Positions 4,707-64,000 are shown, counted from the stretch's first letter. The stretch: DNA of 64,000 bases from Macrostomum lignano (GCA_002269645.1 NIVC01000001.1:868001-932000), one strand, 5' to 3'. Numbers and translations are program-made. The notes: generated from the letters alone by a model not told the origin.

Positions 4707-9137
<4,431 letters not shown>

Positions 9138-25542: not shown

Positions 25543-26086
25543 GACGGCAGCATGTACCGAGTACCACGAGTATTACTTTGTGTCTCTACTGAGCTAATTT
25601 ATTTATATAATTAATTGATAATAAATTTTCAACAGCGGTTGAGCCGTCACTTGCTTATATTGCCATTTTAAACTGATTGTGCTTTTTTAACAGTATTGAA
25701 TTTTCTCTAATTTTCTCTAGGAGTGTCATTTCTCTGTATCTGGTGGCGCCATTTTTGTGTCAGAGAGGGGTGCCATGTTTCTAAGAGGAAATCACAATGA
25801 TGACCAAATTTATCGCCTATTTGTGTTCCTATCGACTTTGCATTTTATATTGCCTTTTGTGTAGAACAGAGTAGGTCGAACTTGGTGATATTGCAATTTC
25901 AAACGTTTATTGCTTTTTTTGTAGCGCAAAAATGCAAACATTTGGCATATTTTAACTGCTGCTATTCAGCTTTATATAGTTGCTTTCCATGCGTAGAAAT
26001 TGTCTGCCAGTATATCGTCACTACTTTTTGCTTTTAAATACAGCTGTACTTTAGAATGTTATAAGTTGTGTTTGTTTCTTTATTTA

Positions 26087-26425
26087 CCTGATTGGTCAGG
26101 CTAGAATGTACAATGATTATCTGATTGGCCAGGCTAGAATGTACAATGATTATCTGATTGCTCAGGCTAGAATGTACAATGATTATCTGATTCGTCAGGC
26201 TAGAATGTACAGGTGATTATCTGATTGGTCAGGCTAGAATGTACAGGTGATTATCTGATTGGTCAGGCTAGAATGTACAGGTGATTATCTGATTGGTCAG
26301 GCTAGAATGTACAGGTGATTATCTGATTCGTCAGGCTAGAATGTACAGGTGATTATCTGATTCGTCAGGCTAGAATGTACAGGTGATTATCTGATCGGTC
26401 AGGCAGAATGTACAGGTGATGTATG
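26087..26425. repeat. 33/34-bp tandem repeat CTGATTGGTCAGGCTAGAATGTACAGGTGATTAT upstream of eIF3A copy 2
   Basis: About 10 units; about 3 units at 20818-20905 upstream of copy 1. Confidence 0.93.
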
Positions 26426-26472
26426 ATGAATGTACAGCTGTTGCACTCCCTGCCTCCGCAGCTCGCCGGGAC

Positions 26473-33415: not shown

Positions 33416-36400
33416 TGTCGTATCGCGTGACTCAGCGGGTGTACATTGAGTACACTCGCTGTTTTATTTTATCGATTGACTGACAATGCTTCATTGAGCG
33501 TGACTAGTGTGTGTTCTTTTAAAACCCTTGTGCTTTTATGCATCAATTATTCTTACGTTCGCTTGTATCAAAAATATAAAAGTCGTCTAGTGAGCTCAGA
33601 GCTCAATACTTTTTTATTTCTCGCACTAACCACTATAGAGTTGTTTTAGTGGCGACGAGGATTGTGGCTGAGCAATGCCTAACCACGCAATCGGAGAATA
33701 TGAGGACTCCTGGAGGAAACCTGGGATGAGTACCAGGAGCGTCTGGAGCAACATTTCCTGGCACAGGACATCACCGACGAAAGTAAAAAGAGGGCCACCC
33801 TGCTGAGCGTCTGCGGTAGGAAAACCTTCCAGTTGGCCAGAAGCCTCTGCTCTCCAGCCAAAGTCGCGGACAAATCCTATGCCGAAATATGCGAGCTGCT
33901 GAGCGCTCATTTCAACCCAAGGCCGAGCGAGATCATTCAGAGGTTCCACTTCAATAACCGAGTTCAGCGCCCTGGAGAGTCGGTGGCAGAGTTCCTTGCG
34001 GAGCTGCGGAAGCTGGCGGAGTTCTGCAATTACGGCGGGAGCCTGTCTGACATGCTACGCGACAGGCTGGTGTGCGGCATCGCGGACCAGCAAATCCAGC
34101 GCCGGCTCCTGATGGAGGCCGAGCTGACCCTCGATACTGCCAAACAGATCGCGCAAGCGGGCGAGTCAGCAGCCAAAAACTTTCAATCGCTGGGCTCAGC
34201 AAAACCTGCGGCAGTGACATCGGCATCGTCAGCGACAGAGAGCGACTCCGTGCTTCGAATGGAACGACAGCGACCGCAAGACAGCCGTCAGTCTGGAACA
34301 GAAGGCCGGCGGCGCTGTTTCCGCTGCTTGTCGACTCGCCATCCGGCAGCCAAATGTCCCTTCGCGGACAAACGCTGTTTCAACTGCAGCAAAACCGGGC
34401 ACACCGCGAAGGCATGCAAGGCGGTGACACAGCACCAGCAAATGCACCAGCTGATTGACCAGCAGCCTTCAGACAGCAGCTCAGCTCAGGCCGCCGAGCC
34501 GCCCAGCCCAGCCGAGGTCGCTTATCCCTTCTACCATCTGGGTGCTGACCGATCGCAGGCCAGGTTTCCTCCAATCGTGACCTCTGTCTTCATCGAGGAG
34601 AAGCGATTCGAGATGGAGGTGGACACGGGGGCATCCGTATCGCTGATGTCCGAACGTACGTTCAAGGAAAACCTGGGAAGCCGGATGTCTCTGCGCAACG
34701 GTTCAGCTCAGTACGTACACCGGTCAAACCGTCCAGATTGGCTACACCGCCTGCGGCTGGACTGGCAATCTATCAAGCGGATGGAAGAAGCTGATGCAGC
34801 CAAGGAGTTGCTACAGGAGTTCTCAGAAGTCTTCCAAGGTCTGGGCGAGCTCAGCGGCAAGCCGGTGTCCATCAGTCTGAAGGAGAACGCCAGTCCAAGG
34901 TTCTATAAGGCGCGGCCGGTGCCGTTTGCGCTGCGCGAGAAGGTTGAGCAGCAGCTACAGAAGGAAATCGACCAAGGAATCCTGGTGCCGGTCAAAAACT
35001 CCGACTGGGCGTCCCCGATCGTGCCGGTAATGAAGTCCGACGGCAGCGTGCGCATCTGCGCTGATTTCAAGCAGACGGTCAACGCAGCTATCCGGCCTGA
35101 GGCTTACCCGCTGCCGAACATCGACGAGCTATTTTCACGCTTGGCTGGCGGTAAGAAGTTCTCAAAACTTGATCTGAGCCAGGCATTTTCGCAGCTTCCC
35201 CTGGATGAGGATGCTCAAGAGCTCTGTACCATCAACACCTCGCTGGGACTTCTTCGCTACACCCGTCTGCCTTTCGGCGTGTCGATCGCCCCCAGCGTGT
35301 TTCAGCGGGTGATGGACAGCTTACTGCGAGGAATTCCGCACTCTGCATCCTTCATCGATGATGTCATCATCACAGGCGAAGACGACGCCAGTCACCTCCG
35401 CAACCTGAGAGCAGTTCTGAAGGTCTTCAAGGAGTCCGGGCTGACCTGCAAGCTTGAGAAGTGCACCTTTTTCAAGGACGAAGTCACATACCTAGGCCAC
35501 CGCATCGACGCCGAAGGGCTGCACCCGCTGGACGATAAGGTTCCAGCTGTGCTGGACGCGCCTGCACCGACTAACACGACTCAACTGAGGAGCTTCTTGG
35601 GCCTCATCAACTACTACGGCAAGTTTTTGCCAAATCTCTCTAGTGTTCTGGCCCCGCTGCACAGGCTCTTGGAGAAGAACTCAAGGTGGCAGTGGGATCG
35701 CAGCGAGGCGGACGCGTTCAGCGCGGCAAAGCAGCTGCTCACGCACCCCAGCGTCCTAGTCCACTATAACGCTGCAGAAGAGCTCTACCTGGAGTGCGAC
35801 GCATCGCAGTACGGGCTCGGTGCCGTCATATTCCACCGTCGGGACGGCATGGACAAGCCGATCGCGTACGCTTCGCGCAGCCTCAGCTCAGCAGAGAAAA
35901 ATTACTGCCAGCTGGAGAAGGAGGCCTTGGCGCTGGTTTTCGGTGTGAAAAAATTTCATCACTATCTGTTTGGTCGGGAGTTCAACCTGTTGACCGACCA
36001 CCGGCCGCTTCTCGGCCTTCTAGGACAAGAGCGACCGCTTCCAGCCCTGGCTTCCGGCCGAGTCCAACGATGGGCGTTGCTGCTGACCGCGTACCGGTAC
36101 CGTCTTGTACACCGCAGCGGGGTCTCCATGCTCCGAGCAGACGCCTTAAGCCGCCTTCCTGCATCAGCTGGCCCTAAGGAAGTTCCGGTGCCTCCAGAAG
36201 TCGTGCAAGTGATGGACTGCCTGGACGCCGGGCCGGTGACTTCATCAGACGTGCGCACCTGGTCCCGCCGCGACCCTACATTGTCACGCGTAATTCTTTA
36301 CTGTCTCTCGGCCTGGTCAGACCGGGATTCCTGGACTTCCGATTTGGTGCCCTTCGGGAAACGGCACTAGGAATTGTCAGTTCAAGACGGCTGCGTTCTC

Positions 36401-37874
36401 TGGGGCAGTCGTGTCGTCATTCCTGAAGTCGGCCAAAGCCGCTTGCTCGACTGCCTGCGTGTTGGACACCCTGGAGCATCCCGGATGAAGTCGCTTGCCA
36501 GAAGTTACATATGGTGGCCGGGCATGGATCGTGACATTGAGGCCAAGGCAGCAAGCTGCACGGACTGCCAGAAGCACCAGCGAGCCGGACCAGAAGCTCC
36601 GCTGCAGCCATGGCCGCTAACGGCAAGGCCTTGGTCGAGAATCCACGTCGATTTTGCCGGTCCCGTCCAAGGTCGGATGCTGCTGGTGGTGGTCGACTCC
36701 TTCTCAAAGTGGCTCGATGTGTACGTGACGACAGCGACGAAGACCTTCGCAACAGTGGAAAAGCTGCGACAGAGCTTCAGCACTCATGGCCTACCGGAGA
36801 CCATCGTCTCGGACAATGGGCCCTGCTTTGCCAGCTTCGAGTTCGACGCCTTTTGTGCCAAGAACGGAATTCGGCACATCCGCACGCCACCCTACCACCC
36901 GGCTTCCAATGGCCAAGCTGAGCGAGCAGTGCAAACTGTTAAGAACTCCCTGAAGAAGCAGGCCAATGACGGCAGCTCCCTGGAGACCCAGCTGGCCAGA
37001 TTCCTGCTCAGCTACCGTACTACACCGCATCCAACGACGGGAGTGGCACCGTGTGAGCTGCTGATGCACCGGACGCTGCGTAGCCTGCTCGACGTACCGA
37101 GGCCAGACATCGCCAAGCGAGTTCTCGAGAGCCAGGAAAAGCAGAAGCAGCAGCACGACTCGGGCGCACAAAGACGAGTCTTCGAGAAGGGCGAGGCGGT
37201 GTTCGTTCAAGACTTTAGCCGCGGGAACGAGCGAACCTGGACATCGGCTATGGTGGTCGGCAAGGAGGGCAGCAACTGGTACAAGTGCATTCTGCCGAAC
37301 AACCGGATGGTGCGGCGGCACACAGAACAGATGCGAATCGACAAGACTTCCCAGCGGCCTGGGCCGCTGCAGACGAATCCGGAATCCAGCGGTGAGCTCA
37401 GGCCTCCACTACCGCAACCGTTGGTTCCGCCGCCACCGCCGCTGCAGCTGCCGCCGCCACCGCCACCGTCGCCGCCGCCGCCGCCGCCAACGCCGCCGCC
37501 GCCGCCAACGCCGCCGCCAACGCCGCCGCCACCGTCGCAGCCTCGACGGCTGCAACTTCCAGATCAAGGACCAGCACAAGCTCTCAGAAGATCAAGCAGA
37601 GCTCGATCGATTCCCGTCCGCCTAAACTACGATGGGAGAGGTGTCGTATCGCGTGGCTCAGCGGGTGTACATTGAGTACACTCGCTGTTTTATTTTATCG
37701 ATTGACTGACAATGCTTCTTTGAGCGTGACTAGTGTGTGTTCTTTTAAAACCCTTGTGCTTTTATGCATCAATTATTCTTACGTTCGCTTGTATCAAAAA
37801 TATAAAAGTCGTCTAGTGAGCTCAGAGCTCAATACTTTTTTATTTCTCGCACTAACCACTATAGAGTTGTTTTA
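33416..37874 (+). mobile_element. Ty3/gypsy LTR retrotransposon (probably Mag-like), full length but defective
   Basis: 233-bp LTRs at 33416-33648 and 37642-37874 with 2 differences seen, 5-bp TSD CTACG, PBS TGGCGACGAGG and PPT GATGGGAGAGG. Domain order is gag (CCHC knuckles)-PR (VDTGAS)-RT (FIDD)-RNase H-IN (HHCC, DDE). Confidence 0.97.
33675..37675 (+). pseudogene. Gypsy gag-pol with a frameshift near 33705, a deletion in the protease (about 34700-34745) and an in-frame TAG at 36368-36370
   Basis: The ATG frame at 33675 is out of frame with ETWDEYQERLEQHF. The LSTYTGQTVQI motif is in a shifted frame and the LLGRD motif is absent. CAC TAG GAA lies between RNase H and integrase. Confidence 0.85.
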
Positions 37875-42223: not shown

Positions 42224-42799
42224 GTCGTCACTGTTAGCTGAGTTTCATTTTTTAAGTTCTAGTTTTCTATACGCGTGTGCGTGAAATAGGGCTCAGGGCC
42301 AGCTGTGCATTTTGAAAACTATCGCTGTATTGACAGCTAATTTTTTCATGTAGGTGAAACATTAGTTATTCATTTTTAATTTTAATTTTTAACTTTGTAG
42401 TGCCATTTTGTATCCGGTGTGCATTTTTTAGTCAAAAGTGCAACCTTGGTGTTTGCCCCGCGCTTGCTATTGGCGGCATTTGCTGAGTTTTAAAGAGTTG
42501 TTGTTTTGGTTTGAACTTACTTAGCGCAGAGGAAGCGTCTTTTACTTTCGCTAGCAGGAGCCAAAAGCAGACAGGCAAATAACAATCTGCTCAGAAGCCA
42601 GCAGCTTGTTGTGTACGGCATATAGCTTTCACTCACGTAACTAAATACACTATTTACTCTGAAGCAGACTTTTTGTTCCACCGAGGTCAGAATAACTCAA
42701 GCAGATGCCTAGCTTCACGCTTTTTCTTTTACAGGCCTCCATTTTTTGACACAAGTTTTTGTTTTTTGCTTTTGCTGACAGCTATGTTGCATCTGGAGG

Positions 42800-44030
42800 G
42801 GCTAGATTAGCAATCCATTCTATTCCTGCATCCTTGTGGGCTAGTTTAGCAATCCATTCTATGTCTGCATCCTTGTGGGCTAGATTAGCAATCCATTGTA
42901 TTCCTGCATCCTTGTGGGCTAGATTAGCAATCAATTCTATTCCTGCATCCTTGTGGGCTAGATTAGCAATCCATTGTATTCCTGCATCCTTGTGGGCTAG
43001 ATTAGCAATCCATTCTATTCCTGCATCCTTGTGGGCTAGATTAGCAATCCATTGTATTCCTGCATCATTGTGGGCTAGATTAGCAATCCATTCTATTCCT
43101 GCATCCTTGTGGGCTAGATTAGCAATCCATTCTATTCCTGCATCCTTGTGGGCTAGATTAGCAATCCATTGTATTCCTGCATCCTTGTGGGCTAGATTAG
43201 CAATCCATTCTATTCCTGCATCCTTGTGGACTAGATTAGCAAAACATTCTATTCCTGCATCCTTGTGGGCTAGATTAGCAATCCATTCTATTCCTGCATC
43301 CTTGTGGGCTAGATTAGCAATCCATTCTATTCCTGCATCCTTGTGGGCTAGATTAGCAATCCATTGTATTCCTGCATCCTTGTGGGCTAGATTAGCAATC
43401 CATTGTATTCCTGCATCCTTGTGGGCTAGATTAGCAATCCATTCTATTCCTGCATCCTCATTGGCTAGATTAGCAATCCATTCTATTCCTGCATCCTTGT
43501 GGGCTAGATTAGCAATCCATTCTATTCCTGCATCCTCATTGGCTAGATTAGCAATCCATTCTATTCCTGCATCCTTGTGGGCTAGATTAGCAATCCATTG
43601 TATTCCTGCATCCTTGTGGGCTAGATTAGCAATCCATTGTATTCCTGCATCCTTGTGGGCTAGATTAGCAATCCATTCTATTCCTGCATCCTTGTGGACT
43701 AGATTAGCAAAACATTCTATTCCTGCATCCTTGTGGGCTAGATTAGCAATCCATTGTATTCCTGCATCCTTGTGGGCTAGATTAGCAATCCATTCTATTC
43801 CTGCATCCTTGTGGGCTAGATTAGCAATCCATTGTATTCCTGCATCCTTGTGGGCTAGATTAGCAATCCATTGTATTCCTGCATCCTTGTGGGCTAGATT
43901 AGCAATCCATTGTATTCCTGCATCCTTGTGGGCTAGATTAGCAATCCATTCTATTCCTGCATCCTTGTGGGCTAGATTAGCAATCCATTCTATTCCTGCA
44001 TCCTTGTGGGCTAGATTAGCAATCCATTAT
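42800..44030. repeat. 39-bp tandem repeat CTAGATTAGCAATCCATTCTATTCCTGCATCCTTGTGGG between two convergent genes
   Basis: About 31 near-identical units. Confidence 0.98.
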
Positions 44031-44182
44031 CAGTGCAACATCAGCATCCTCTGGCAGGAAGTCATTCAGTGTGAAATGACTGCAGTCACGTGGAACAGAT
44101 ATAGCAGTTAATAACCTGACGGCCCGAGCAACGCCGGGCTAGTATATTTCTTAACGGAATTTAGCACAGTTGCGCCACCATT

Positions 44183-47100
44183 TTAAACGGCTCGCAGGAA
44201 GGCGGCCAGGCCGGCCAGGGTCTCCCTGCCAACGGAGACGATCTGGGCGGGCGGCAGGACAAAGCCGTAGCGCCCGGTGTCGGGCAGCTCCAGGGTGTAG
44301 GCGTAGCGAATTCCGATCGAGATCGCCCAGTCGTCGGAGCCGCCGGCGGCCGGGTCTGACGATGGCGTGAGGCGGGTTTTTTGGAGGCATCAATATTGTG
44401 TCACGTGACGCGATTTTTTGTCCTGAATAGGAACTTTGCGATTTCGTCAATTAGTGGTTTGGTGATTAGCGCGGCGCATCTGAAGGCTGCGTACGGGGGG
44501 TCGCCACACACACCCTCAATTACCCCAGCTAATGCTGGCACCCATTTTACAGCTGGGTGAACTGAAGCAATGCAGAGCTAAGTTCAGTGTCTTGCGCAAG
44601 TGATACAAATTGTAATTCCTAGTGGGTCAAGAATCGAACCCAAACCTTTCAGTAGTGAGTCCGACGCTCTAACCACTAAGCTACTCGAGTAGATGCCACA
44701 GATACTAGAGTAACTAGATGGGCCACTCAGCACATTTGCGCACAAGCTACTTTCAGTTCAGTAGCAAGATAAACTGGAGCATTTTAATGTATTTTTAAAG
44801 CCAAGGCTCATTTATTGTCTCTTTAGTATCTGTGGTTGATGCTAGCTGGATTTCAAACCGACATTTCACTGCCGACAATTTCAACTGCTGACCCTAACCC
44901 TATTCGAATAACTTCTTGGGTCTATTAATAGTGGTCCTTGTCCCTAACCTTAGCCCAATAACACTAATCCTAACTCTTTAGCCCTAAGCCTAAGTTAAAA
45001 TCGGAGGTTCAAATGTTGTGGGCCCCCCCAAATGACTCACAGAGCAGGTCGGCCGAGTGGCCAACCGTATAGCGCCTGCCGTTGACGCTCTGCAGTGCCC
45101 GGGCGCCGGTCTGAGCGGCAGAAAGCTGAAAAATACGGAGCCAGTGAGTAGTACATGCTGCATGTTGAAGCTTGGCTTTACTGCCCTGGGATAATGCTGA
45201 GGATACCGGGCTCAAAAGCTGCTTACCAGCTCCGCAACGTTGTTGGGGTTCACGCCGAACGCATAGCCAAATGGATGAAGCCAGTACTGCCCGTATGAGT
45301 GCACAGACCAGAAGGCCTTGATGGCTGATTTGTTTCGCAGAACGAAGTTCCTGATGGCCTGGGTCTCCGGCTCGGAGAAAGCGGAGACTCCTCTGTACAC
45401 GTCGGAGCACTGGGAGCCGCTGCTACCCGTGCCGCCGAATTTGAACTCGAAGTTGCGGTTCAAATCCACGCCGTAGCAGGCCCTGCCGGGGCGTCGGTTC
45501 TTGCGCCACATACGGTTCTGGATTTGGAGGTTTAATTAATTAATAATTCATCGTAGGAGCGCTGCGGGCAGCCTGGCTCAACGCCCTCTTCCCATTCCGC
45601 TGAATCCTGTGTAGTGCATTCTGCACTTGTTTTTATTTTTCTCCCCTTGTCTGGGTCGGCCACCCCCAGTGACCATGTTCTGTCTGGTTTCGGGGTGGGT
45701 GGTCCAGGCCTTGGCTTTGCGCGCGGCCTGATTGGTTGTGCAGTTGTTTTAACTGTGATGGACGGCTCCTATTGGCTGGGTGAGGCCCCCTCTCTGTCGC
45801 TCACCCTTTCTCTCTGCCCAAGCCGGTTTGGCGGTATATATAAGTCTCTTCGTCCCGAGCTGCCCCAAACGCTCGCCTCATCCCTTTTTCGTGTCTGCCG
45901 GTTCTGTTTTGGTTTTGCTAAATTACCACGAATTAGAACTAGACGGAGAAGTTTCACAGCGATTGTAGCTACAAGCGTACAGTTACTCAGAGAATAGAGC
46001 AAACGACTACAGGGCTATCCAGAGATTAGAGATCAGCTGAAAAATTCAAGGATATATACAGTAGTATAAACATCCTGTTTGAGACTTCTGTCGCACAGAA
46101 TAAGCAAACCTCCCAATTAATTTTTATTTACACTGGTGTGGGTGTACTCGTATCCGTCAGGATTGGCCAGCGGCACAAAGACCAGGTTCCAGGAGTCCAG
46201 CAGGCTGCGGTATTGAGGATCGCTGATCACCTACGAATTGAGTCGGGGTTAGTGGGGATAAGTAAATATGAAAAACTGAAGGATGACAACTTAAAAGGAC
46301 GAGCTTTACCTGGTCCATAATGTACAGCAGGGTGGCCGGGCTGATCCACTCGCGGGCGTGAATGCCGCCGTCCATGAAAATCATCGGGTTGGCGGAGTTG
46401 CTGCCCAGCTGAAAAATAGGAGTTCGATGGGAGTGCCAGGGAGCGTCACGGAGTATCAGGGTGTATCGGGAGCGCAATGAGAGAGTGTCCGGGGGTTGTG
46501 GAGTGTTGTGGAGTGTTTTGGAGGATTCTGGAGTGTTGTTGAGGGTTGTGGAGTGTCATGGAGTGTTGTGGAGGATTCTGGAGTGTTTTTGAGGGTTGTG
46601 GAGTGTCATGGAGTGTTGTGGAGGACTGAGGTGTCAGTGAATGTTGCGTAGGGTTGTGGAGTGTTGTGGAGTGTTTTTGAGGGTTATGGAGTGTTGTGAA
46701 ATGTTTTTGAGGGTTGTGGAGTGTTGTGGAGGGTTTTGGAGTGTCATGGAGTGTTGTGGAGTGTTGTGGAGGACTGAGGTGTCAGTGAATGTTGTGTAGG
46801 GTTGTGGAGTGTTGTGGAGTGTTGTTGAGGGTTATGGAGTGTTGTGGAATGTTGTTGAGGGTTGTGGAGTGTTGTGGAGGGTTTTGGAGTGTCATGGAGT
46901 GTTGTGGAGTGTTGTGGAGGACTGAGGTGTCAGTGAATGTTGTGTAGGGTTGTGGAGTGTTGTGGAGTGTTGTGGAGTGTTGTTGAGGGTTGTGGAGTGC
47001 TGTGGAGGGTTTTGGAGTGTCATGGAGTTTGTTGTGGAGTGTTGTGGAGGATTGCGGTGTAAGGGAGTGCCAGGGAGTGTTGTCTGGGTTTGTGGAATGT

Positions 47101-48573
47101 TATTTAGTGTTTTGGAGTATTTTTAGGGTTGTGGAGAGTCATGGAGTGTCAGGGAGTGTTACTGTGAGTTACGGAATATTAGGTGTGAAGTGAGCATTCA
47201 TCACGCAGTCTCACCTTGTACGCGATGATGTCGCGGTTCTCGATGCTCTTGCCGATGACCTCCTTGGAGCACTGGCTGCCGCACTTGCTGATCAGTGCGT
47301 TGGCGATGGCGTGGAACTGGCAGTAGAAAAGTACGGTAAGTCAGTGGGATAGAGACATCATGTACTTCAGAAGCTGATGACCAGATCACCCGGGCCGCAC
47401 TTACCTCAGCATAGCGGTGGTACTTGCTGTGATCGTCAAAGGCAGCCCGGTTCATGTCGTTTTCCTGGATAAAAAGGCTGAATGAAAAAAATTGTCAATT
47501 AATTTATCTATTGAAACCACTCATTATCATGCTGTCAGTCGGTAATCAGTAATCAGTAAGATAAGTATCCAGTGTACCATGTGCTCGGGGCCTAGCTCCC
47601 AGTGACTTTAAATACTAGCTCCCAGTGACTCTAAAAAGTAGCTCCCAGTGACTCTAAATACTAGCTCCCAGTGACTCTAAATACTAGCTCCCAGTGATTC
47701 TAAATACTAGCTCCTAGTGCTCGATGCTTAGCACCCAGTGGCCCCACAACCAGTGCTCCTCACCGTCCCAGATCGGGATTCGAGACGCGGTACTGGATGC
47801 GTTGCTGCGCGAGCGCCGCCTTGACGTCCTGCAGCTGCTTGCGGGTGACTCGAACCTGCACCGAGCGGCCGGGGGCGCTGGGCCCCGACCAGAAGTCCAG
47901 GAAGTCCGTCTGTGTTTGGAGACATTTTTGTGAGCAAGTTAAAACTTTTAATAATAATATAATAATTGATTGCACCTGCCCTAATGGCCAAATATGCAAC
48001 CGACAGCTCAGCCGCAGCTATTTGCGCGGCGCATCTGGAGGCTGCATACGGCTGTTCAGTCCAAGGACGTGGGGGTTGTCAAACAGACCCTCAATTACCC
48101 CAGCTAATGCAGGCAGCCATTTTACAACTGGGTGAACTGAAGCAATGCAGAGTCTTGCTCAAGGACACAGATTGTTCCGAGTAGATCAGAATCGAACCAA
48201 CGACCTTTCAGTTTTGAGTCCAACGCTCTAACCACGAGGCTACAGTTGTAGCCTTAAAACTCAGTCACGAACGTGTCTTTAGTTCATGGCAGCATTTTTT
48301 GACTGAAGAGTCGCTTGTAAAGTTTTCGCCCACGGGACAGAGTTTTCACAGTGCCTTCAATCTGTTAGGGGTGCTAAGGAGTCGCTGGCTAAACAATTCA
48401 CAGTCACACAGTCAAACCTCTTTGCCTTGCAGTCCGAGCTCGCGCCACTGTTCCAGGATGTCCACCTGTTCCTGGGTGCTGGGCGTCAGAGTCAGCAGCT
48501 GGTCGCCCATGTACTGCAGTGGACTGTAGGCAGCCGCAGCCGCTATGCACAGCAGCAAAACTAATTGTCTCAT
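44183..48573 (-). CDS. Secreted M14A metallocarboxypeptidase, carboxypeptidase B-like (407 aa); exons 48418-48573, 47764-47909, 47405-47477, 47215-47316, 46310-46408, 46132-46230, 45227-45517, 45041-45125, 44183-44355
   Basis: Signal peptide and propeptide, then DGGIHAREWI, NPDGYEY, WRKNR, GVDLNRNF, SVHSY and YTLELPD. GGSDDW places Asp at the S1' position, which indicates B-type specificity. All 8 introns are phase-consistent. Confidence 0.96.
44470..44686 (-). mobile_element. tRNA-derived SINE family D
   Basis: Minus-strand head GTAGCTTAGTGGTTAGAGCGTCGGACTC...GGGTTCGATTC (A/B boxes) and body CACCCAGCTGTAAAATGGGT; second copy at 48022-48243. Confidence 0.85.
44697..44834. mobile_element. MITE family C, internally deleted copy
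   Basis: Both TIR ends are present; flanks GTAGATGC and GTTGATGC (7/8 match) are consistent with an 8-bp TSD. Confidence 0.8.
46495..47060. repeat. GAGTGTTGTG-based degenerate array with longer repeated blocks in a carboxypeptidase intron
   Basis: Direct inspection. Confidence 0.92.
47593..47718. repeat. 23-bp tandem repeat TAGCTCCCAGTGACTCTAAATAC
   Basis: About 5 units, intronic. Confidence 0.92.
48022..48243 (-). mobile_element. tRNA-derived SINE family D, second copy
   Basis: Colinear with 44470-44686. Confidence 0.85.
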
Positions 48574-51703: not shown

Positions 51704-54700
51704 CTACGGGTTCATTCGCGCCATCAGTCTGGCGCGCAAGCTTGGCAGGAAGTAAGCAAGGCCAACAACCAGTGCTCCGACTCCAGCGGCGCCGCCAATA
51801 ATGGGGGCACTGACCGGGGCAGAGTGAATGACGGCTCCAACAATGATTAACCCAATCATTGGAACCAAAGTGCGACACAAGATGTCACGTCTTCTGCCGA
51901 GGAACTCCTGCTGAGGCATATTGAATTTCGCTTTGCGATGCTGCAAAAGCAGATGTGATGCAAGTCCCACAACGCCAATTAAAAGCACCGAGCCGCCCTC
52001 TGCAATTAGGGAACCGGCAACGGTGGTGATCAAAGCTTCCCTCTGCATCAAGGTGTAGACTAATCGTAGGATTCGAACTGCGGCAGTAGCAATGGTTTGC
52101 ACCGCGTTGGGCAAAAAGTGGCTAAAACGCCAGGCTAGATTATTCAACTGAGTACTGCTCACCCGGCCATAAATTAAATAGTTGACAAAGTGTTCGCAGT
52201 TGTTAGATAGTAAACTGTAACTCCTACTGCCACACAGTTGATTGAATTTGGCGTCGATCTGATTCCAGTCTAAATCGGAGTTGTGCACGACCTTCTGGAT
52301 TTGATTGTCTGCAACTCGAAGAAATCCTTGAAACTTGACGACTCCCATGGCTCCGGAACCTTGCGGCAATGCGTACGTGACCCCAACGCCGGAACAAGTG
52401 GCAGCATCCCACTCGGTTAAAATGAAATCAACCTCAGAAACTACTCCGTTGACCATCCGATTTAGAATAATGTGATCGTATTGCCTGAGACTGCGTCTAT
52501 CAACTCTGTCTTCGAGTTCAACTTTTCGATTCATTTCCAAAACTTCCAGTGATTTTTCTTTGGTCAGTTTCTTCATTTTGTCCTGAATTTCGGCGAGTTC
52601 AGTACCGAACAGGCTTTGAATGCCGCACATCCGACCGGCATCAGGATTATTTCTCAGCCAGAAGCAAAAGTCCCGACTGCAAACCTTGCAGCCAAACTTC
52701 TTGGCCTTCGCAGTCCATCCCTTCCTGTCGTCGTCGGCATTCAAAAACGTGCAGTCTGTCAGCTCCTCCAGAATAGCAAAACCAGTGGCTTCTTCAAAGC
52801 CATAATAGTTGACGCGTCGAATCGAGCTCTCACCCGGACCAATGACGAGCTTTTCAAATCGCACCCGTTTCTGGTCGTGATTATTTTCGTACAACTCGAC
52901 CCGAACAATATCTCTGCAGCCATCTACTGCAGAGCAGCTGCGCATAATTGCTTCGTGCTTGTAAAAGCAAGGCGACTTGTAGAACTTTATGTGGCCTCTC
53001 TCGAACTCAACAAGGTCTTGCACTGAGTGCACGGGAACTGTGCACTGCTCCCTGTTGCTACTGTGCTTGATGCTGCACCAGCGAGCAAAGTCGCGACTGC
53101 TGTTCCACTGGAAGTTGTGCTGCTTCTCTTTGAGTCGGTCGTTGGCTCTTTTAATCACCTCTTCTGGGGTGAGAACGCAGCCTTCCAGTACGTTGTACTT
53201 AATCGTGTAAATTTTCTGCTTCTTTAAGTCTACTGATAAAGTTTGCCTCTCAATCTGACCTCTCCACGAATCTCTGTAAAAAATGAGATCGATTGTAGCG
53301 CAGTGGGGATTGTTCCCATCCGGTAGCACCGGGTTGCCGACCACCACTGCGTGCTGGTACAGAGAATACCAATTGTCTCTCCAAGAAATGACCGAACCAG
53401 CTGAAATGCTTTGCATATCATATACTTCTTCAGCTATATGTGCTGGTGACTGGCTACCACCGCCATACAACTGGCAGTTCAAGCTGGGATCATTGTGTAC
53501 GCACAGCTTGGCGTCCTTCTCTTCAGCATCAATGATGTACTTTAGTTGTGAAACACACAAATTTTGTTTTTGAGAGCCGTACTGGAGCGTTTTAATGCTG
53601 AATTGTCCGGATGACTGACCGCTGCCGGTACTGATGCCCGCAACAACCCGATAGACACCATTCACGTGTAAGATGTCGCCAACTCTTAGGCCATCACAAG
53701 CCACGGGCAACTCACGGTCATGATTGGGAGTAACACTCTCAAGCAATACGCGCCGATTGCTTTGCACTTCATTTTGAGTCAGTGCATCCCAAATGCTGTC
53801 TTTCCAATCATCAAATCTTCTATCGCTGTTCGTCACCAGGCGACAAATTTTGAATGAACTTTCACTGTGGTTCAAGGCCAGATTTTCTATGAACTCAATG
53901 CGTCGGGTTAATTCCGCTTCACTGATGACACGAGACTGATATTGAATGACTCGAGTCACTGCCTTGTCCGTTTTGAGCACTAGTTCACTTGTGTGAACGT
54001 AATGCAATTCATGGGGCTTGATTACTTGCAATTCGAGCAAAAGTTTTCGCCCATTATTCAGTTTAGTTACTTTGGTCACTTCTCCGTGAAGTCTGTTTTT
54101 TAGACAGCAGTTAAATTCAAGATGATCACCTTCTTTAATTTCGTGAGTATGAAAGCCACCTAGAAATATGGGCACCGAATTGTCAGCTCTGTGGCTGATG
54201 GACTTGGTCTTACACCACACGACAAACAGAGTGCCACAGTTAGCAATCAGAGAGTATTCCCGCTCGTTGAGGCGGCTTCGAGCTCTTTCAACCACAACAT
54301 CGGGCTCGTGGCACCAGAGATCCGAGAAGTGACAGAGAAAGCAGTTCGGATGCACTTGCTTAGTTCCCTGTCTGTCATATTTGAAAACAAAGTCCTCTCT
54401 GATCACAGTTTTAGCGTCAAGCCACGATTTCAATCCGTAATGAATAGCAGTGACAATGTATTTTTCATTTTCACGTGCCAGTTTTTCCACGATAACCCTG
54501 TGCCACTTGCCAGTGTACCACAGGCGCATGACGTCACCTTTCTTTAGCTGTTGAAGCAACTGGAGGGTTACCGGTTCCTCTGAGTAGATGCCTGCGAGAT
54601 TTACCGGAGATGATTCTTCTAAGTCTAAAGGACAATCAGCGGTGTTGTCATTGTGCACGCACAGTGTTGTTTCCGTCTCTTTCTTTCTTATCAGATACTT

Positions 54701-55852
54701 TAGCGTGCAAGTCTTGCGATTTTCGTAGTCGACTTCACTGTAGTTGACTAATCCAACGCTGACTTCATCCGCATCGCGAACTACACTGCAGACTACTCTG
54801 TAGGCATCGTCAACAAAAATGATGTCGCCTCTTTGAAGATTTTTCGCTTTCACCCTCTGGGTCAATGGTCGAATCGGTCTACTCTGATTCGTCATCTGTG
54901 CGGCTTGCTGCCTCCAGTCCTGCCCGTGGCGACTCGCGTCGGTGAGAAGTAGGCAAAACCGCAGAGTCAAAATGCGCCTCGGATACGCGAGGCCGCGCAT
55001 CAAGTCGATCCTGTGGAGAAATTCCTCAGTCTCCACGCACTTCGATACCGATTTCACTACTAGAACGCGCTCTTTCGATTCTTTCGATTGTCGAAATTTT
55101 CGCTCAGAAATGTTCATAAAGGAAATTCGATCTTTCATCAAGTCCTGCGTGGAAACACTCAATGATAGTAAATAAATGTCCTTGCACATCTCTTCGCTAC
55201 TTCGTACGACTGCATGAATTGATCCAGAGTCGTGTTTAAGACTCAAATGATCTCCAACTTTCACTTGGTGGGTTTCAAAATTCCCAGGCAGATAAATTGG
55301 CACGGTACAATGTTTTCTGTGAGATTGGTCCTTGGTCTTGCACCAAAGTACGAAACCTGAATCACCAAACCATTTGATTTTCTCGTTCAAGCAACTTTGG
55401 GCTCTCCTGACGACTTCGTTGAGAGGATGGCAGTACGATTTTGGAAAGTGTCGAAGTTGGCAACTGGGTTTCAGATATTTTGATCTTCTAGAATTTATAA
55501 TATTAACTTTTAACACATCTTTGCTTACTCGTCTCTCAATTTGGCCGGAAAAACTGCATACTTTGGAATAAATTGTCCAAAATATAAAGAATCCGTCTTT
55601 GACTTCAACTTCAACAACGATTGCTTCAGAACGTCCTGACGCTTGGATGACATCCCCTGGCCTTACATTTCGAATCGATTCCGGCGTTAAAGTTTCGTAG
55701 CTCTGAATTGAGCCTGTAATCGGTGAAGGTCTCTCAGCTTGCAGAGCTGCAGCCTCGGCAGTGCCGGGCGGCTGGGCGGACACCACAGCTGCTGCAGCCT
55801 CTTGTTGAAGGGGCAGCTGCTGTGCACTCTGCGAGCCTGCGAGTGCCTGCAT
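51704..55852 (-). CDS. 1382-aa protein with tandem LRAT/H-box-NC (permuted NlpC/P60)-like domains and C-terminal hydrophobic helices; coding region uninterrupted
   Basis: 4.1-kb ORF. Repeated GD(V/H)I...H/E.V...E.V..RA...L.E...Y....N(C/S)..F..WC units, a canonical YSLLSNNCEHFVNY near 52190, and terminal TM-like segments. Confidence 0.85.
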   Translation of the reverse strand: MQALAGSQSAQQLPLQQEAAAAVVSAQPPGTAEAAALQAERPSPITGSIQSYETLTPESIRNVRPGDVIQASGRSEAIVVEVEVKDGFFIFWTIYSKVCSFSGQIERRVSKDVLKVNIINSRRSKYLKPSCQLRHFPKSYCHPLNEVVRRAQSCLNEKIKWFGDSGFVLWCKTKDQSHRKHCTVPIYLPGNFETHQVKVGDHLSLKHDSGSIHAVVRSSEEMCKDIYLLSLSVSTQDLMKDRISFMNISERKFRQSKESKERVLVVKSVSKCVETEEFLHRIDLMRGLAYPRRILTLRFCLLLTDASRHGQDWRQQAAQMTNQSRPIRPLTQRVKAKNLQRGDIIFVDDAYRVVCSVVRDADEVSVGLVNYSEVDYENRKTCTLKYLIRKKETETTLCVHNDNTADCPLDLEESSPVNLAGIYSEEPVTLQLLQQLKKGDVMRLWYTGKWHRVIVEKLARENEKYIVTAIHYGLKSWLDAKTVIREDFVFKYDRQGTKQVHPNCFLCHFSDLWCHEPDVVVERARSRLNEREYSLIANCGTLFVVWCKTKSISHRADNSVPIFLGGFHTHEIKEGDHLEFNCCLKNRLHGEVTKVTKLNNGRKLLLELQVIKPHELHYVHTSELVLKTDKAVTRVIQYQSRVISEAELTRRIEFIENLALNHSESSFKICRLVTNSDRRFDDWKDSIWDALTQNEVQSNRRVLLESVTPNHDRELPVACDGLRVGDILHVNGVYRVVAGISTGSGQSSGQFSIKTLQYGSQKQNLCVSQLKYIIDAEEKDAKLCVHNDPSLNCQLYGGGSQSPAHIAEEVYDMQSISAGSVISWRDNWYSLYQHAVVVGNPVLPDGNNPHCATIDLIFYRDSWRGQIERQTLSVDLKKQKIYTIKYNVLEGCVLTPEEVIKRANDRLKEKQHNFQWNSSRDFARWCSIKHSSNREQCTVPVHSVQDLVEFERGHIKFYKSPCFYKHEAIMRSCSAVDGCRDIVRVELYENNHDQKRVRFEKLVIGPGESSIRRVNYYGFEEATGFAILEELTDCTFLNADDDRKGWTAKAKKFGCKVCSRDFCFWLRNNPDAGRMCGIQSLFGTELAEIQDKMKKLTKEKSLEVLEMNRKVELEDRVDRRSLRQYDHIILNRMVNGVVSEVDFILTEWDAATCSGVGVTYALPQGSGAMGVVKFQGFLRVADNQIQKVVHNSDLDWNQIDAKFNQLCGSRSYSLLSNNCEHFVNYLIYGRVSSTQLNNLAWRFSHFLPNAVQTIATAAVRILRLVYTLMQREALITTVAGSLIAEGGSVLLIGVVGLASHLLLQHRKAKFNMPQQEFLGRRRDILCRTLVPMIGLIIVGAVIHSAPVSAPIIGGAAGVGALVVGLAYFLPSLRARLMARMNP

Positions 55853-57859
55853 CTGAAATTTTCCGGGTTTTTTAGAAAGCTAATTTCGGCAATTAGTGAT
55901 CCTTGAGCATGGCTGTAACACATTGCCAAGGAGAACTAATGTAGAAGGTCAGATTTTAGATTTTGCTAGAGACCGGTTTTCGATGCACAAATACGAAATG
56001 TTTTTAATATACGACTCCAGAGAAAGGCATATTTCATCTCATAAAGATAGAGTTAAGCGATTTTCGGTATAATAATAAATATTACCTAGTAAAGTGTCAG
56101 GAGACGTAAATAGTTTATTGGAAGTCGCTATATTCATGTATTATCGCATTTTTTGCTAGCATAGAATTTTCATAACTGAATTTCGTCCTTGTCGAAGCCA
56201 TTTTTACGATTAGCTCAATGAAATAAACAAATATCTTCGCAAAACCAGTTTAGAAAACAAAAAAGTATTTGGAGCCTTGCCACTGTCCTGCGACTTAACG
56301 ATTTTTCTTAATAAACTTATTAGTGCACCTGGGACGAACCATGTGCTTGCTACATGTGGAATTTGAAAATCCAGAACGTTAGATTGTGGATCAGATGCTA
56401 AAATTACTTGACGTGATTTCATTTGCATATGTTTTATTTTGACAACCAGTCGTAAAAATGGAAATTACTGTAGGAAAGAATAAGTAGCTTGATATTTCAA
56501 TGAGTTTCTATTTCAACAACTCTACTGAGGCTCACAGCAACTATTTACGGGTTTCAAGCAACTTGTCAATTTGAATACTATTTTAATTAAGAATGAATTA
56601 TATATCAGCAGACTCATCAGTCTTAGAGTCAGTATCGTCACTTCCACAAAATTGAAACTTTACATCATTAGAAAACTCTTGCTAGTCATGAGTTCGACTC
56701 GTGAACTTCTGAGACTTTTTGACGATGTTCTCATATAAAGCTTAGAGTTTCGAGTTTTTGAAGTTTTTCGATCTTCGACAATGTGAAATTGCTTGTAAAA
56801 GTAAAGCTCAGAGCAATTAAGAAATGCAGTAATAGTAGCAACAGTAATTAAAGACATCTTACCTGCTTACCAATGCAGAAGTTTGTAGAAGGCAAATCAA
56901 TAAGCAGTTACAAAATTAAATGTATTTTTTTAGGTTAGGAATCTCAAAACACTGGTTTTAGAACTGTCTGCTAGTTTGACGCATGCAAACTTTTATTAAC
57001 ACGCGCTTATAATTGCGTATGGCAGCAAAACAGTTTCTGCAAGAATGCACTTCTTTTCTGTCTATCTTATTTCTGATAGTATAACCATGGCGTATAGAGA
57101 TGCACAAGGCAGTGCATACTGCAGCACCGAGTCTGAGTCTGCCCCCCCCCCCAAACAACTTAGTTGAATAATGAATAGCATGCGTTCTGCGTCCTTTTCT
57201 TTTAGGTATCTCTTTATCTCTCTCTCTCTCTCTCTCTCTCGACTGTCTTTAAGAGCTACTTAGATGTTGGAGCGAATGATGCATTGTTCAAGCTTCATCA
57301 TCTAGAACGGCCTTACACACGGCTCAGCGCTCGACATACACTTTTAGGGTCTTAGACTGTCTCTGACCATCAAAAGCAAGCAGAATTCAATGAATTCAAA
57401 GGCAGACCCGGTAACATCAAAATGCGAAAATGGCCTCCGTAGAAATTTAGGATAATAGGCTGCCATTTCGACATAAAAATAAACAAATTACACCCATCAC
57501 CTGACGTAAAAAATAAACAGAGATGCCATCTATACTACTACAGAAGATTATTATTTTATCATTGCTACTTATTGATAGACAAATCATGAAGTAAGACGTC
57601 ATTTGAACCGGGTCGTTCAGCCACCACCAGTTTGTACCTGTTTTACAGTAGCGAATATTTAAGGCTAATATAAGTCAAACTTACATACTTGTACATCTTT
57701 TTAAACAGCTTTTCTGTTCTCCACGTGTTCTGGGAGAAGATTTGAGAGAGAATTAGAAGATGGCAGAGGGTGTGAGAGTGGGTACTGTGAGATATGAGAC
57801 TATGAGATATTAGAATGTGAGGTAAACAGTAATACATGAGGTTTGAGATATGAGACTGT

Positions 57860-60771: not shown

Positions 60772-61822
60772 ATGTCCGCTGAAGGAGATCAATCTGTCAG
60801 TGCCAGCCATCTCAGCACGGTGATCGAAGAGGAAGATCTATACGACAACCACCTGTTGTACTCATCCGGCGTCAACAATAGCGGCGGCACCACCGCGTCT
60901 CAAACGCCAACTGACGACGAGTCCACTTCGAGACGGTCATCTCAGGTCAGTGGAGTTATTGCGGTGCTGGGTCTTGTTATTAGAGGCAGGTGGCTGTGTG
61001 CACCCTGGTGCAACTTAAGCTACATTGTCACGCAACCGGCGAGAGGCATCGCTGCCCATTCCGCCGACGTACGCAGTCACACGCAGAGGCACACACTCAC
61101 ACAGGAGTGTACAGCGGCCCAGACTTTATTTATCGTTAGGCATGTACACTTCACTGTGCCTTGGGGTTTGGCCTTTATAGGGCGTTAATTGCACGAGCAG
61201 AGCCAATCCGAGGTTCCAATTCAGCCCCAGGCTGCACGTGGAATCGAGCCAGGGCCGCTGGCACATCAGAGCGCCGCGCCAGACCACTCGGCTACAACCC
61301 CATTCGCTACAGGATGACAATGTCGCAAAATTATACCAATCACTATAAATGCTTGCTTAAGGTACAATAATTGAAGACACCTTGACAATGCAGCTATTCC
61401 TGTGGTGAAACATATGATGAAAATGATGCATATCGGAGATAGACTCACTGAGAATGTTGACTACGCTGGCACACCCAACGGACGTGCGGCTCCAGGAACT
61501 TCTCAGCAGTCACAATAAGGCGCATACCCGTGTATGACAGAGGTCAATTCAATTAGTTTGGGGCATCATTTGATGAAGACTTGACAAGCGCAATAAAATC
61601 TCCCCGCAGATATCGGAGTCCTCCGCAGCAGAGACCGCCACCTCTGGCCCATCTACCGTGCCGAAGAAATCGTCGCTTCGTCGACCAATCGAAACCGGCG
61701 CTTCGTCCGGCGCTCGCCAGCTGGTTGAGAAGCGTCGCAACAAGGCCCCGTCTGCCCCCGCCGCGAAAGCAGAGAAAAAATCCATATTCACTTTAGGCCA
61801 CGTGCGCAAGATTTTCGGTTCT

Positions 61823-61855
<33 letters not shown>

Positions 61856-62107
61856 GGCTCAAACTCGAGACGATCCAGCGATGGCTCCGGCGGTGGCTCC
61901 GAAGAGACCGAGTTGACTCAGCGTCGGCTGTCCCAGATAAAGGTGGACAGCCTGCCCGCGGTTTTCCTTGTCAAGTATCTGGGCCTGGCGTCTGCTGCGG
62001 GCCTCTTTGGTGTTGACAGCATTAAAAGGCCGGTGGACGAGCTGGTCAAAGCGGCTGGTAAAAGGCGAGCAAAAACTGGCCGACCGCTGCCCATTGCTCA
62101 GCTGACG
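60772..62107 (+). CDS. PTB/PID-domain protein, 5' part; exons 60772-60945 and 61610-about 62107, probably continuing beyond the repeat or window
   Basis: Phase-0 GT-AG intron. LPAVFLVKYLG...GLFG...KRPVDELV...LPIAQLTV is typical of the start of a PTB domain. Confidence 0.7.
60991..61297 (-). mobile_element. SINE family A, full-length copy with tRNA-like head, in the PTB gene intron
   Basis: Minus strand GTAGCCGAGTGGTCTGGCGCGG...GGCTCGATTCCA (A and B boxes). Confidence 0.85.
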
Positions 62108-62249
62108 GTAAATGATGCCGAACTCTGGATGGTGCTGCGAGTTTTTGTGAATTTATTAGCATTGTCTTGACCAGCTCAAATTTTATACTAACATCTAATT
62201 GTCTGCCAATTGTCCCGACTCATTAGTTCCCACACACTATTTATGACCC

Positions 62250-64000
62250 GAGATTGTTCATGATCCGAGAGATTGTTCATGATCCAAAATTGTATATGAT
62301 TCGAGATTGTTCATGATCCGAGAGATTGTTCATGATCCAAGATTGTTCATGATCCGAGAGATTGTTCATGATCCGAGAGATTGTTCATGATCCGAGAGAT
62401 TGTTCATGATCCGAGAGATTGTTCATGATCCGAGATTGTTCATGATCCGAGATTGTTCATGATCCGAGAGATTGTTCATGATCCGAGAGATTGTTCATGA
62501 TCCGAGAGATTGTTCATGATCCGAGAGATTGTTCATGATCCGAGATTGTTCATGATCCGAGAGATTGTTCATGATCCGAGAGATTGTTCATGATCCGAGA
62601 TTGTTCATGATCCGAGAGATTGTTCATGATCCGAGAGATTGTTCATGATCCGAGAGATTGTTCATGATCCGAGAGATTGTTCATGATCCGAGATTGTTCA
62701 TGATCCGAGAGATTGTTCATGATCCGAGAGATTGTTCATGATCCGAGAGATTGTTCATGATCCGAGATTGTTCATGATCCGAGATTGTTCATGATCCGAG
62801 AGATTGTTCATGATCCGAGAGATTGTTCATGATCCGAGAGATTGTTCATGATCCGAGAGATTGTTCATGATCCGAGATTGTTCATGATCCGAGAGATTGT
62901 TCATGATCCGAGAGATTGTTCATGATCCGAGATTGTTCATGATCCGAGAGATTGTTCATGATCCGAGAGATTGTTCATGATCCGAGAGATTGTTCATGAT
63001 CCGAGAGATTGTTCATGATCCGAGATTGTTCATGATCCGAGAGATTGTTCATGATCCGAGAGATTGTTCATGATCCGAGAGATTGTTCATGATCCGAGAT
63101 TGTTCATGATCCGAGATTGTTCATGATCCGAGATTGTTCATGATCCGAGAGATTGTTCATGATCCGAGAGATTGTTCATGATCCGAGATTGTTCATGATC
63201 CGAGAGATTGTTAATGATCCGAGAGATTGTTCATGATCCGAGAGATTGTTCATGATCCGAGAGATTGTTCATGATCCGAGAGATTGTTCATGATCCGAGA
63301 GATTGTTCATGATCCGAGAGATTGTTCATGATCCGAGATTGTTCATGATCCGAGATTGTTCATGATCCGAGATTGTTCATGATCCGAGATTGTTCATGAT
63401 CCGAGATTGTTCATGATCCTTTGTTCATGATCCGAGAGATTGTTCATGATCCGAGATTGTTCATGATCCGAGAGATTGTTAATGATCCGAGAGATTGTTC
63501 ATGATCCGAGAGATTGTTCATGATCCGAGAGATTGTTCATGATCCGAGAGATTGTTCATGATCCGAGATTGTTCATGATCCGAGATTGTTCATAATCCTT
63601 TGTTCATGATCCGAGAGATTGTTCATGATCCGAGATTGTTCATGATCCGAGATTGTTCATGATCCGAGATTGTTCATGATCCTTTGTTCATGATCCGAGA
63701 GATTGTTCATGATCCGAGAGATTGTTCATGATCCGAGAGATTGTTAATGATCCGAGAGATTGTTAATGATCCGAGAGATTGTTCATGATCCGAGAGATTG
63801 TTCATGATCCGAGAGATTGTTCATGATCCGAGAGATTGTTCATGATCCTTTGTTCATGATCCGAGAGATTGTTCATGATCCAAGATTGTTCATGATCCGA
63901 GAGATTGTTCATGATCCGAGAGATTGTTCATGATCCGAGAGATTGTTCATGATCCGAGATTGTTCATGATCCGAGATTGTTCATGATCCGAGATTGTTCA
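62250..64000. repeat. 17/19-bp tandem repeat (GA)GAGATTGTTCATGATCC running off the window end
   Basis: More than 90 units. Confidence 0.98.

Follow-up and report, generated by a model that had tools for sequence, protein, structure and literature searches.

A Macrostomum lignano gene encoding an array of LRAT-like domains with a C-terminal membrane anchor

The window analyzed here is a 64,000-nucleotide stretch of the Macrostomum lignano genome (GCA_002269645.1, NIVC01000001.1:868001-932000), and the gene in question lies on its minus strand at positions 51704..55852. We found that this gene encodes a serial array of LRAT/H-NC-type domains that closes with a canonical NCEHF domain and a hydrophobic C-terminal region. 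LRAT and PLAAT proteins are circularly permuted NlpC/P60 Cys-His-His acyltransferases/phospholipases A1/2. We consider it moderately probable that the array functions as a cytosol-facing, C-terminally anchored, PLAAT-like binder or remodeler of membrane lipids whose domains are mostly non-catalytic. As judged from sequence comparisons, it is neither unique to this gene nor foreign.

Domain architecture

The open reading frame (ORF) begins with ATG and runs for 1382 codons with no interruption, exactly as an initial annotation of the window had it. By our own estimate, a stop-free run of this length would arise by chance with a probability of ~(61/64)^1382, or ~1e-29, and the open run is therefore not random. 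Internal repeats were measured by BLASTP between four pieces of the protein (self-BLASTP of the whole protein returned only the identity match). Residues 15-324 matched 388-694 (26% identity, E 9e-27), 334-562 matched 717-941 (E 8e-17) and 100-249 matched 862-1005 (E 1e-8), which supports the three long repeated modules plus a terminal unit described initially. The proposed start and end motifs of the modules were present in all three (GDVIQ...EAIVV and EVVRRAQ...GDSGFVLWCKTK in module 1, GDVMRL...HRVIV and VVVERAR...NCGTLFVVWCKTK in module 2, GSVISW...HAVVV and EVIKRAN...NSSRDFARWCSIK in module 3), except that the Asn of N-x-x-x-F is missing in module 1. The GDH- and GDI-type subrepeats are also real: a hidden Markov model (HMM) of H2-I2 recovered H1-I1 (residues 197-412) with E 2e-38. 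The order of units, named L, H and I, is L1-H1-I1-L2-H2-I2-L3-H3-linker-L4-TM, where TM denotes the transmembrane region. All features below are on the minus strand.

55706..55852, minus: N-terminal Ala/Gln-rich leader, residues 1-49 (translation); no hydrophobic signal-like segment; ratio of nonsynonymous to synonymous substitution rates (dN/dS) 1.3
55268..55705, minus: L1, degenerate LRAT-like, residues 50-195; L-type HMM match at residues 56-194; repeat with L2
54854..55267, minus: H1, GDH-type unit, residues 196-333; within the H-I HMM match at residues 197-412 (E 2e-38)
54569..54853, minus: I1, GDI-type unit with LCVHND motif, residues 334-428; H-I HMM; predicted small beta-barrel
54140..54568, minus: L2, LRAT-like, residues 429-571; Pfam LRAT alone E 0.0019; hhalign against L3 99.3%
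53699..54139, minus: H2, GDH-type unit, residues 572-718; five strands, then three helices predicted by AlphaFold2 (AF2); hhalign 90.5%
53423..53698, minus: I2, GDI-type unit, residues 719-810; five-strand small barrel predicted by AF2; LCVHND..C.LYGGG..P motif
53012..53422, minus: L3, LRAT-like, residues 811-947; Pfam LRAT alone E 0.0011
52628..53011, minus: H3, probable diverged LRAT-like unit, residues 948-1075; hhalign 92% against the canonical LRAT profile
52496..52627, minus: charged helical linker, residues 1076-1119 (sequence); AF2 helices of low confidence
52118..52495, minus: L4, canonical NCEHF LRAT domain, residues 1120-1245; Pfam LRAT alone 33.7 bits
51707..52117, minus: C-terminal membrane region, residues 1246-1382; amphipathic helix and three hydrophobic segments
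51704..51706, minus: stop codon TAG (translation)

Several motifs distinguish the units. The L3 motif WNSxRDFARWCSIKHxSNREQ is near-invariant across paralogues, and H3 holds CSRDFCFW plus an insert bearing a TFLNADDDR motif. The I units carry L-C-V-H-N-D-x3-[DN]-C-x-L-Y-G-G-G-x3-P, which is strongly conserved and was found in Macrostomum paralogues only; it resembles the K-V-V-H-N-S strand of L4.

Homology of the units to LRAT

The initial annotation had proposed comparison with Pfam LRAT (PF04970, curated cut-off 24.3 bits) as a check. The whole protein scored above this cut-off (61.3 bits, E 1.4e-16, three stretches). Scanned in isolation, L4 was above the cut-off (33.7 bits), L3 and L2 were below it (19.7 and 18.9 bits, respectively) and L1 gave no match. 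Individual matches to Pfam LRAT (E<=0.1) were also obtained for 11 of 14 non-canonical L-type domains of Macrostomum. The C-terminal half of L4, including NNCEHFVNYLIYGR, aligned to crystal-structure sequences of PLAAT2 and PLAAT3 in PDB, with E 4.5e-4 for the single sequence and 1.1e-6 for a profile of four paralogues. An HMM of Macrostomum L2/L3 found 227 domains in 112 collected proteins, including the canonical NCEHF domains at the N-terminus of bivalve proteins.

Profile-profile comparison by hhalign placed the L-type domains close to canonical NCEHF domains, with 99.9% (E 8e-31) for Ser-type L domains, 99.6% (E 2e-23) for Macrostomum L units and 99.8% (E 1e-29) for L4; Macrostomum L units and L4 matched each other at 94% (E 1e-7). 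Against canonical LRAT, H1/H2 reached 90.5% (E 1.4e-6, 89 columns), H3 reached 92% (E 5.7e-7, 105 columns extending to the F-x-x-W motif) and the I units 75% (E 2.6e-5, first strands only). With shallow profiles of seven rows, the comparison of H units with LRAT was not significant. By these profiles, L1-L3 are clear LRAT homologues and L4 is a canonical member. H1-H3 are probably more diverged LRAT derivatives, a reading based on the hhalign values of 90-92% with no fold match, and the origin of I1 and I2 is uncertain. Together, the Pfam score, the hhalign values of 99.6-99.9% and the PLAAT2/3 matches bear out the serial LRAT/H-NC-type array with a C-terminal anchor that had been proposed, and the array is probably even more LRAT-rich than suggested at that time, the GDH-type units being diverged LRAT domains.

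Relatives and taxonomic distribution

Residues 406-1382 were used as the query of an exhaustive HMMER search against 1.84 billion representatives, which returned 102 proteins with E<=1e-3, of which 25 reached E<=1e-10 and 6 reached E<=1e-30. The named matches were M. lignano paralogues, bivalve proteins and one Branchiostoma protein, all of them metazoan, and there was no viral or bacterial relative among them. All named relatives were labeled hypothetical, uncharacterized or 'LRAT domain-containing'. A word-indexed search detected only P0002 (M. lignano, hypothetical BOX15_Mlig000580g1, 87% identity) and two Sinanodonta woodiana LRAT-domain proteins. No description of Macrostomum LRAT proteins or of tandem LRAT/NlpC-P60 arrays was found in a literature search.

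The M. lignano paralogues showed 35-41% identity along almost the entire query. These proteins (Mlig011640, Mlig027402, the ORFs of the sister locus described below and others) share the L-H-I-L-H-L4-TM layout and the conserved motifs of residues ~406-1382, but have two L-H modules where the window protein has three. Matches of the H-I HMM were restricted to Macrostomum. The sister locus (L001, NIVC01001606.1) contains four related elements. One is an uninterrupted copy of 1379 codons, 92% identical to the window gene at the nucleotide level; two are shorter paralogues (2671-5640 with 989 codons and 19046-21856 with 936), also uninterrupted, with two L-H modules each.

The fourth element, at 14848-17101 of the sister locus, is an incomplete tandem copy of the sister gene's 3' part, in two pieces separated by a frame break, with 91% amino acid identity to residues 635-1131 and 78% to residues 1106-1382. 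P0002 differs from the uninterrupted ORF of this locus in 7 C-terminal residues, because its gene model apparently joins into the partial duplicate.

Bivalve relatives were found in Potamilus, Mytilus, Mercenaria and Sinanodonta, with up to 1391 residues and 9 matched stretches; one further relative of 1683 residues had 10 matched stretches, and the Branchiostoma (amphioxus) protein had three domains with three NCEH motifs. The bivalve arrays (Sinanodonta P0003/P0004, Potamilus P0011, Mytilus P0013/P0018, Mercenaria P0015) use the same kit, with 4-10 LRAT-like domains. Like the window protein, they have one canonical NCEH domain adjoining a multi-TM region and a run of LRAT-like domains in which Ser replaces the Cys and an F-x-x-W-[CA]-K motif is present. 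However, the order is reversed (canonical domain, TM helices, array), H and I units are absent, and most of the Ser-type domains retain both His residues, in contrast to those of the window protein. The array is thus not unique, given the paralogue family in M. lignano and these bivalve proteins.

Two features are peculiar to the bivalve side. In P0003, P0011, P0013, P0015 and P0030, a C-x2-C pair immediately precedes the canonical domain and a second pair, [IV]-C-x2-C-[YC], lies inside the TM region (for example, CSYCS...ICKNCY); Macrostomum proteins lack both. These pairs may be a metal-binding or palmitoylation feature.

Gene structure and origin

A protein identical to that of the window gene is already present in GCA_002269645.1 (scaffold NIVC01000001.1:919704-923852) as a single-exon gene call of 1382 residues. 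Its coding sequence (CDS) has no introns, and its nearest called neighbors are a PID-domain gene in the upstream flank (338 residues over 3.6 kb, window ~60772-64000, plus strand) and a peptidase M14 gene in the downstream flank (carboxypeptidase with propeptide, 407 residues over 4.4 kb, ~44183-48573, minus strand), both multi-exon since 338-407 residues are spread across 3.6-4.4 kb. It has been reported that M. lignano genes have 4.9 introns on average, and that 38.8% of genes are trans-spliced (PMC5730564). The GenBank gene models of this assembly are derived from a genome-guided transcriptome, with RPKM (reads per kilobase per million mapped reads) >=0.5 or a de novo transcript (PMC5730564); the presence of the poly-LRAT gene in such an annotation is therefore indirect evidence for its transcription. 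The sequence ttttcag (55853-55859) abuts the ATG on its 5' side and would fit a splice or trans-splice acceptor, as far as we infer from this short motif.

The initial annotation regarded the gene as the only intron-free long coding region of the neighborhood and suggested retroposition or a foreign origin. The first part holds insofar as the gene is intron-free amid multi-exon neighbors; it is not the sole long ORF, as a Ty3/gypsy-type pol of 845 + 433 residues is also present in the window. That the gene was retroposed or horizontally acquired (e.g., from a viral H-NC gene) and inserted in an intron-rich region would fit with its lack of introns in such surroundings and in a genome with several introns per gene, but we regard this origin as extremely improbable. 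All examined paralogues are single uninterrupted ORFs arranged in a tandem cluster, no intron-containing parent gene was found, and a bivalve homologue has almost all of its CDS in one exon. Also, no poly(A) tract was found 3' of the stop codon, the GC content of the gene (0.45-0.47) lies inside the range of the window and matches its surroundings, and every named relative among the 1.84 billion representatives is metazoan. The suggestion of a retroposed or foreign gene is not supported by these observations.

Selection and conservation

Comparison of the window gene with its 1379-codon copy at the sister locus gave dN 0.065, dS 0.128 and dN/dS 0.51. Synonymous differences numbered 107 and nonsynonymous ones 201, and a binomial test supported a ratio below 1 (p 2e-7). 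By unit, dN/dS was 1.3 in the leader, ~1.0 in L1, 0.81 in the TM region and 0.32-0.49 in the other units. The gene is under purifying selection yet fast-evolving. Among paralogues, L4 was the most conserved unit (51% pairwise identity, 30% invariant columns), followed by H3 (47%).

We also considered that the gene is a decaying duplicate, i.e., a pseudogene in the making within a redundant and repeat-rich genome. The M. lignano assembly is highly redundant (PMC5730564), the sister locus holds the partial tandem duplicate with frame breaks, dN/dS is ~1 in L1 and the N-terminus, and the aligned catalytic His of L4 is lost (see below). However, both copies retain an unbroken 4.1-kb ORF and their alignment contains just 5 gap columns, dN/dS lies significantly under 1 (0.32-0.49 in most units), and the transcript-based annotation includes the gene. 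Such decay seems to us quite improbable.

Catalytic positions

The catalytic His of the N-terminal strand is His23 in PLAAT3 and His60 in LRAT, and the second His of the triad is His35 of PLAAT3. Both LRAT and PLAAT proteins use a Cys-His-His triad whose catalytic Cys is located inside NCEHF (PMC5133064). In a family-wide alignment of the 227 L-type domains, the nucleophile column held Ser 127 times, Cys 60 times, Ala 10 times and Gly and Asp 3 times each, and both His columns were His in most domains. The corresponding residues of the window protein (first His / second His / nucleophile column) are as follows.

L1: Glu76 / Ser / Asp164 (family alignment)
L2: His451 / His471 / Gly540 (family alignment)
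L3: His834 / Phe / Ser919 (family alignment)
H3: His966 / Tyr or Glu / Ser1059 (profile alignment)
L4: Asp1142 / Thr or Tyr / Cys1219 (profile-profile alignment)

The NCEHF Cys is kept only in L4 (NNCEHF, Cys1219), where both NCEHF and Cys1219 are invariant. At the first-His column of L4, the other paralogues (P0005-P0008 and both shorter paralogues of the sister locus, representing four paralogue lineages) keep His, in the form EVHF. Asp is found instead in the window protein and in P0002, its 87% identical duplicate; the Asp1142 codon is GAT (52427-52429). The second-His position of L4 is Thr/Tyr (VTY) in all Macrostomum paralogues. NCGTLF of L2 was examined as a retained catalytic Cys and rejected: Gly540 occupies the nucleophile column, Cys539 is out of register by one residue upstream, and none of the paralogues has this Cys.

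By these criteria, no unit of the window protein appears to have a complete canonical Cys-His-His site, L4 included, and phospholipase/acyltransferase activity therefore cannot simply be assumed. Of the initial assignment to a phospholipase/acyltransferase-type family, LRAT membership stands, and an intact triad was found in none of the units. Given the Asp at the catalytic-His column of L4, it seems likelier that the window copy is a binder or regulator with weak or no activity than that it is a robust phospholipase; the paralogues that keep both His and Cys are likelier to be enzymes.

A different possibility is that the protein is an active multi-site enzyme, in which L4 would work through a Cys-Asp dyad or Cys plus another His, and/or Ser-type domains through Ser-His-His. 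This is consistent with the invariance of NCEHF and Cys1219 in the most conserved unit, with the predominance of the (H, H, x) pattern among the 227 domains, which is beyond the expectation for dead sites, and with the two His residues of L2 accompanied by a Cys one residue off the nucleophile column. However, PLAAT3 with Cys replaced by Ser is inactive (PMC12017856), the L2 Cys is missing in all paralogues, and no unit is complete (E/S/D in L1, H/H/G in L2, H/F/S in L3, D/T or Y/C in L4). We therefore consider a multi-site enzyme unlikely.

Membrane region and predicted structure

Kyte-Doolittle analysis revealed three hydrophobic segments, at residues ~1273-1305, 1323-1346 and 1352-1375 (window ~51728-52036), and none at the N-terminus. 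This agrees with the hydrophobic helices that had been placed at about 51720-52040, closing the protein. The first segment begins ~55 residues past Cys1219, so that L4, the sole NCEHF domain, adjoins the anchor as in PLAAT and LRAT. AF2 helices in this region were of low confidence; full-length paralogues have a counterpart of the region. LRAT and HRASLS proteins are bitopic, with one C-terminal helix (PMC5133064).

In the AF2 model of residues 406-1382 (977 residues, alignment of seven sequences), the predicted local distance difference test score (pLDDT) was 65-88 for L2, H2, I2 and L3 (75-84 for L2) and below 50 for H3, L4 and TM. H2-I2 modeled separately (residues 572-812, ten sequences) reached pLDDT 80.1 and a predicted template modeling score of 0.79, with five strands followed by three helices in H2 and a five-strand small barrel in I2. 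Foldseek comparison of the H2-I2 model with PDB and BFVD gave no significant match, only SH3/Sm/CAP-Gly-like pieces of ~40 residues (E >0.1). No significant structural match was obtained, and the LRAT assignment rests on sequence profiles.

Interpretation

The reading that we favor is an elaboration of a PLAAT-type membrane phospholipid enzyme into an array. The C-terminal anchor would keep L4 on the surface of the bilayer, the arrangement of PLAAT3 and LRAT, and the upstream L, H and I units, having lost the nucleophile, would serve as non-catalytic binding or spacing modules; their partners could be membrane lipid, acyl chains or proteins. It has been shown that PLAAT3 C113S is catalytically inactive and still moves to damaged organelles (PMC12017856), which makes a non-catalytic membrane role conceivable.

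Several observations weigh against this reading. PDB sequences yielded no PLAAT match to an HMMER profile built from 14 L-type domains of Macrostomum. The AF2 model of residues 406-1382 had a mean pLDDT of only 53.7, and Foldseek found nothing below E 0.05 for it in PDB; from this low-pLDDT model, only weak Tudor/SH3-like matches and one CHAP-like match were seen. The cytosol-facing orientation of the array, which we infer, has the lack of a signal peptide as its sole basis. In addition, Asp1142 was equated with the catalytic His by profile-profile alignment and not by coordinates, and other invariant His residues of L4 (His1127 in DHI, His1190 in VVHN) might substitute for it. Finally, dN/dS of ~1 in L1 and 0.8 in the TM region indicates relaxed constraint on parts of the protein.

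The features of the family also bear on an innate-defense or organelle-clearance effector, in which Ser-type domains would sense damaged or foreign membranes, with the NCEHF domain as executioner lipase, and the family would have expanded under host-pathogen pressure. The family is indeed expanded and variable in domain number (tandem clusters in M. lignano, 4-10 domains in bivalves) and evolves fast (dN/dS 0.51 overall, ~1 in L1). Vertebrate PLAATs degrade organelle membranes, and the inactive C113S form homes to damaged membranes (PMC12017856). On the other hand, no TIR, DEATH or lectin domain was detected in the Pfam scan, lineage-specific expansion is not peculiar to immunity, and the executioner domain of the window copy lacks the aligned His. 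We give this speculative explanation a low probability. A broader proposal, which is speculative and rather doubtful, is that poly-LRAT proteins are a hitherto undescribed class of spiralian membrane-surveillance effectors. Their arrays of Cys-to-Ser domains would provide multivalent sensing of damaged or foreign membranes and be tethered to a single catalytic PLAAT-like domain that hydrolyzes phospholipid; copies with His to Asp in L4, such as the window gene, would have become pure sensors or decoys.

Returning to the anchored, mostly non-catalytic lipid binder, the family has a more general significance in that the LRAT domain is also used as a repeat unit, with up to ten copies per chain. 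Since most copies lack the nucleophile while other positions are conserved, these proteins offer a natural test of the role of a catalytically silent LRAT domain in membrane, acyl-chain or partner binding. M. lignano is amenable to transgenesis and RNA interference. At present the importance of the family is limited by its narrow taxonomic range, and its proteins were already deposited as hypothetical.

Other features of the window

The remaining features of the 64-kb window are listed below; no transfer RNA genes were found in it.

20927-21961, 23939-24709 and 26416-27471, plus: two tandem copies of an eIF3a N-terminal PCI/TPR-like region (E 4e-109 and 1e-113) and a PCI-domain exon
20819-20905 and 26084-26420: 34-nucleotide tandem repeat upstream of both eIF3a copies
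33833-37675, plus: Ty3/gypsy-type retrotransposon pol, GC 0.57-0.58; 845-residue ORF (reverse transcriptase, RNase H), a single stop and an in-frame 433-residue ORF (integrase zinc-binding and core)
14363-15100, minus: ORF with a Gly_transf_sug (DXD) match, E 7e-9
26-1228, 6840-8257, 42799-44028, 46495-47049, 62250-64000 and others: long tandem arrays, with units including (TGAACTCA)n, (AGAT)355, 39 nucleotides x31 and 19 nucleotides x96, the last running to the window end

Local duplication seems to have affected the eIF3a gene or its 5' part, and the Gly_transf_sug ORF probably represents a single exon within a larger gene. Long ORFs at 6558-8324 and 42759-44111 are artefacts, as they overlap tandem repeats; the ORF at 30053-31705 over a 12-nucleotide repeat array is possibly also an artefact.

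Comparison with characterized LRAT-family proteins

Known roles of LRAT and PLAAT proteins include vitamin A storage, N-acylphosphatidylethanolamine synthesis, lens organelle degradation and picornavirus entry. To our knowledge, all characterized members of the family are single-domain proteins. The 2A H-NC proteins of picornaviruses and avian viruses share the H-box/NC motif family and belong to the same Pfam LRAT superfamily, but each is a single small domain within a polyprotein, whereas the window protein is an array; no viral fold match for H2-I2 was found in the BFVD search. FAM84 proteins, which we take to have an LRAT-type domain without a canonical active site, may be likened in this respect to L1-L3 and H1-H3. 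They differ in having a single domain and no multi-helix anchor, and no sequence relationship specific to FAM84 was seen in any search made. LRATD1/LRATD2 (FAM84A/B) are uncharacterized (PMC5133064).

The nearest counterparts of the window protein overall are the uncharacterized Macrostomum paralogues and the bivalve arrays. Among characterized proteins, the closest parallel is with PLAAT/HRASLS1-5 and LRAT, which combine an NCEHF domain with a C-terminal membrane anchor, just as L4 and the TM region do in the window protein. The differences are threefold. PLAAT and LRAT have a complete Cys-His-His triad and the window protein has none in any unit; their anchor is one TM helix where the window protein has three hydrophobic segments; and in place of their single domain, the window protein has seven LRAT-type units, full or probable, and two more that look partial.

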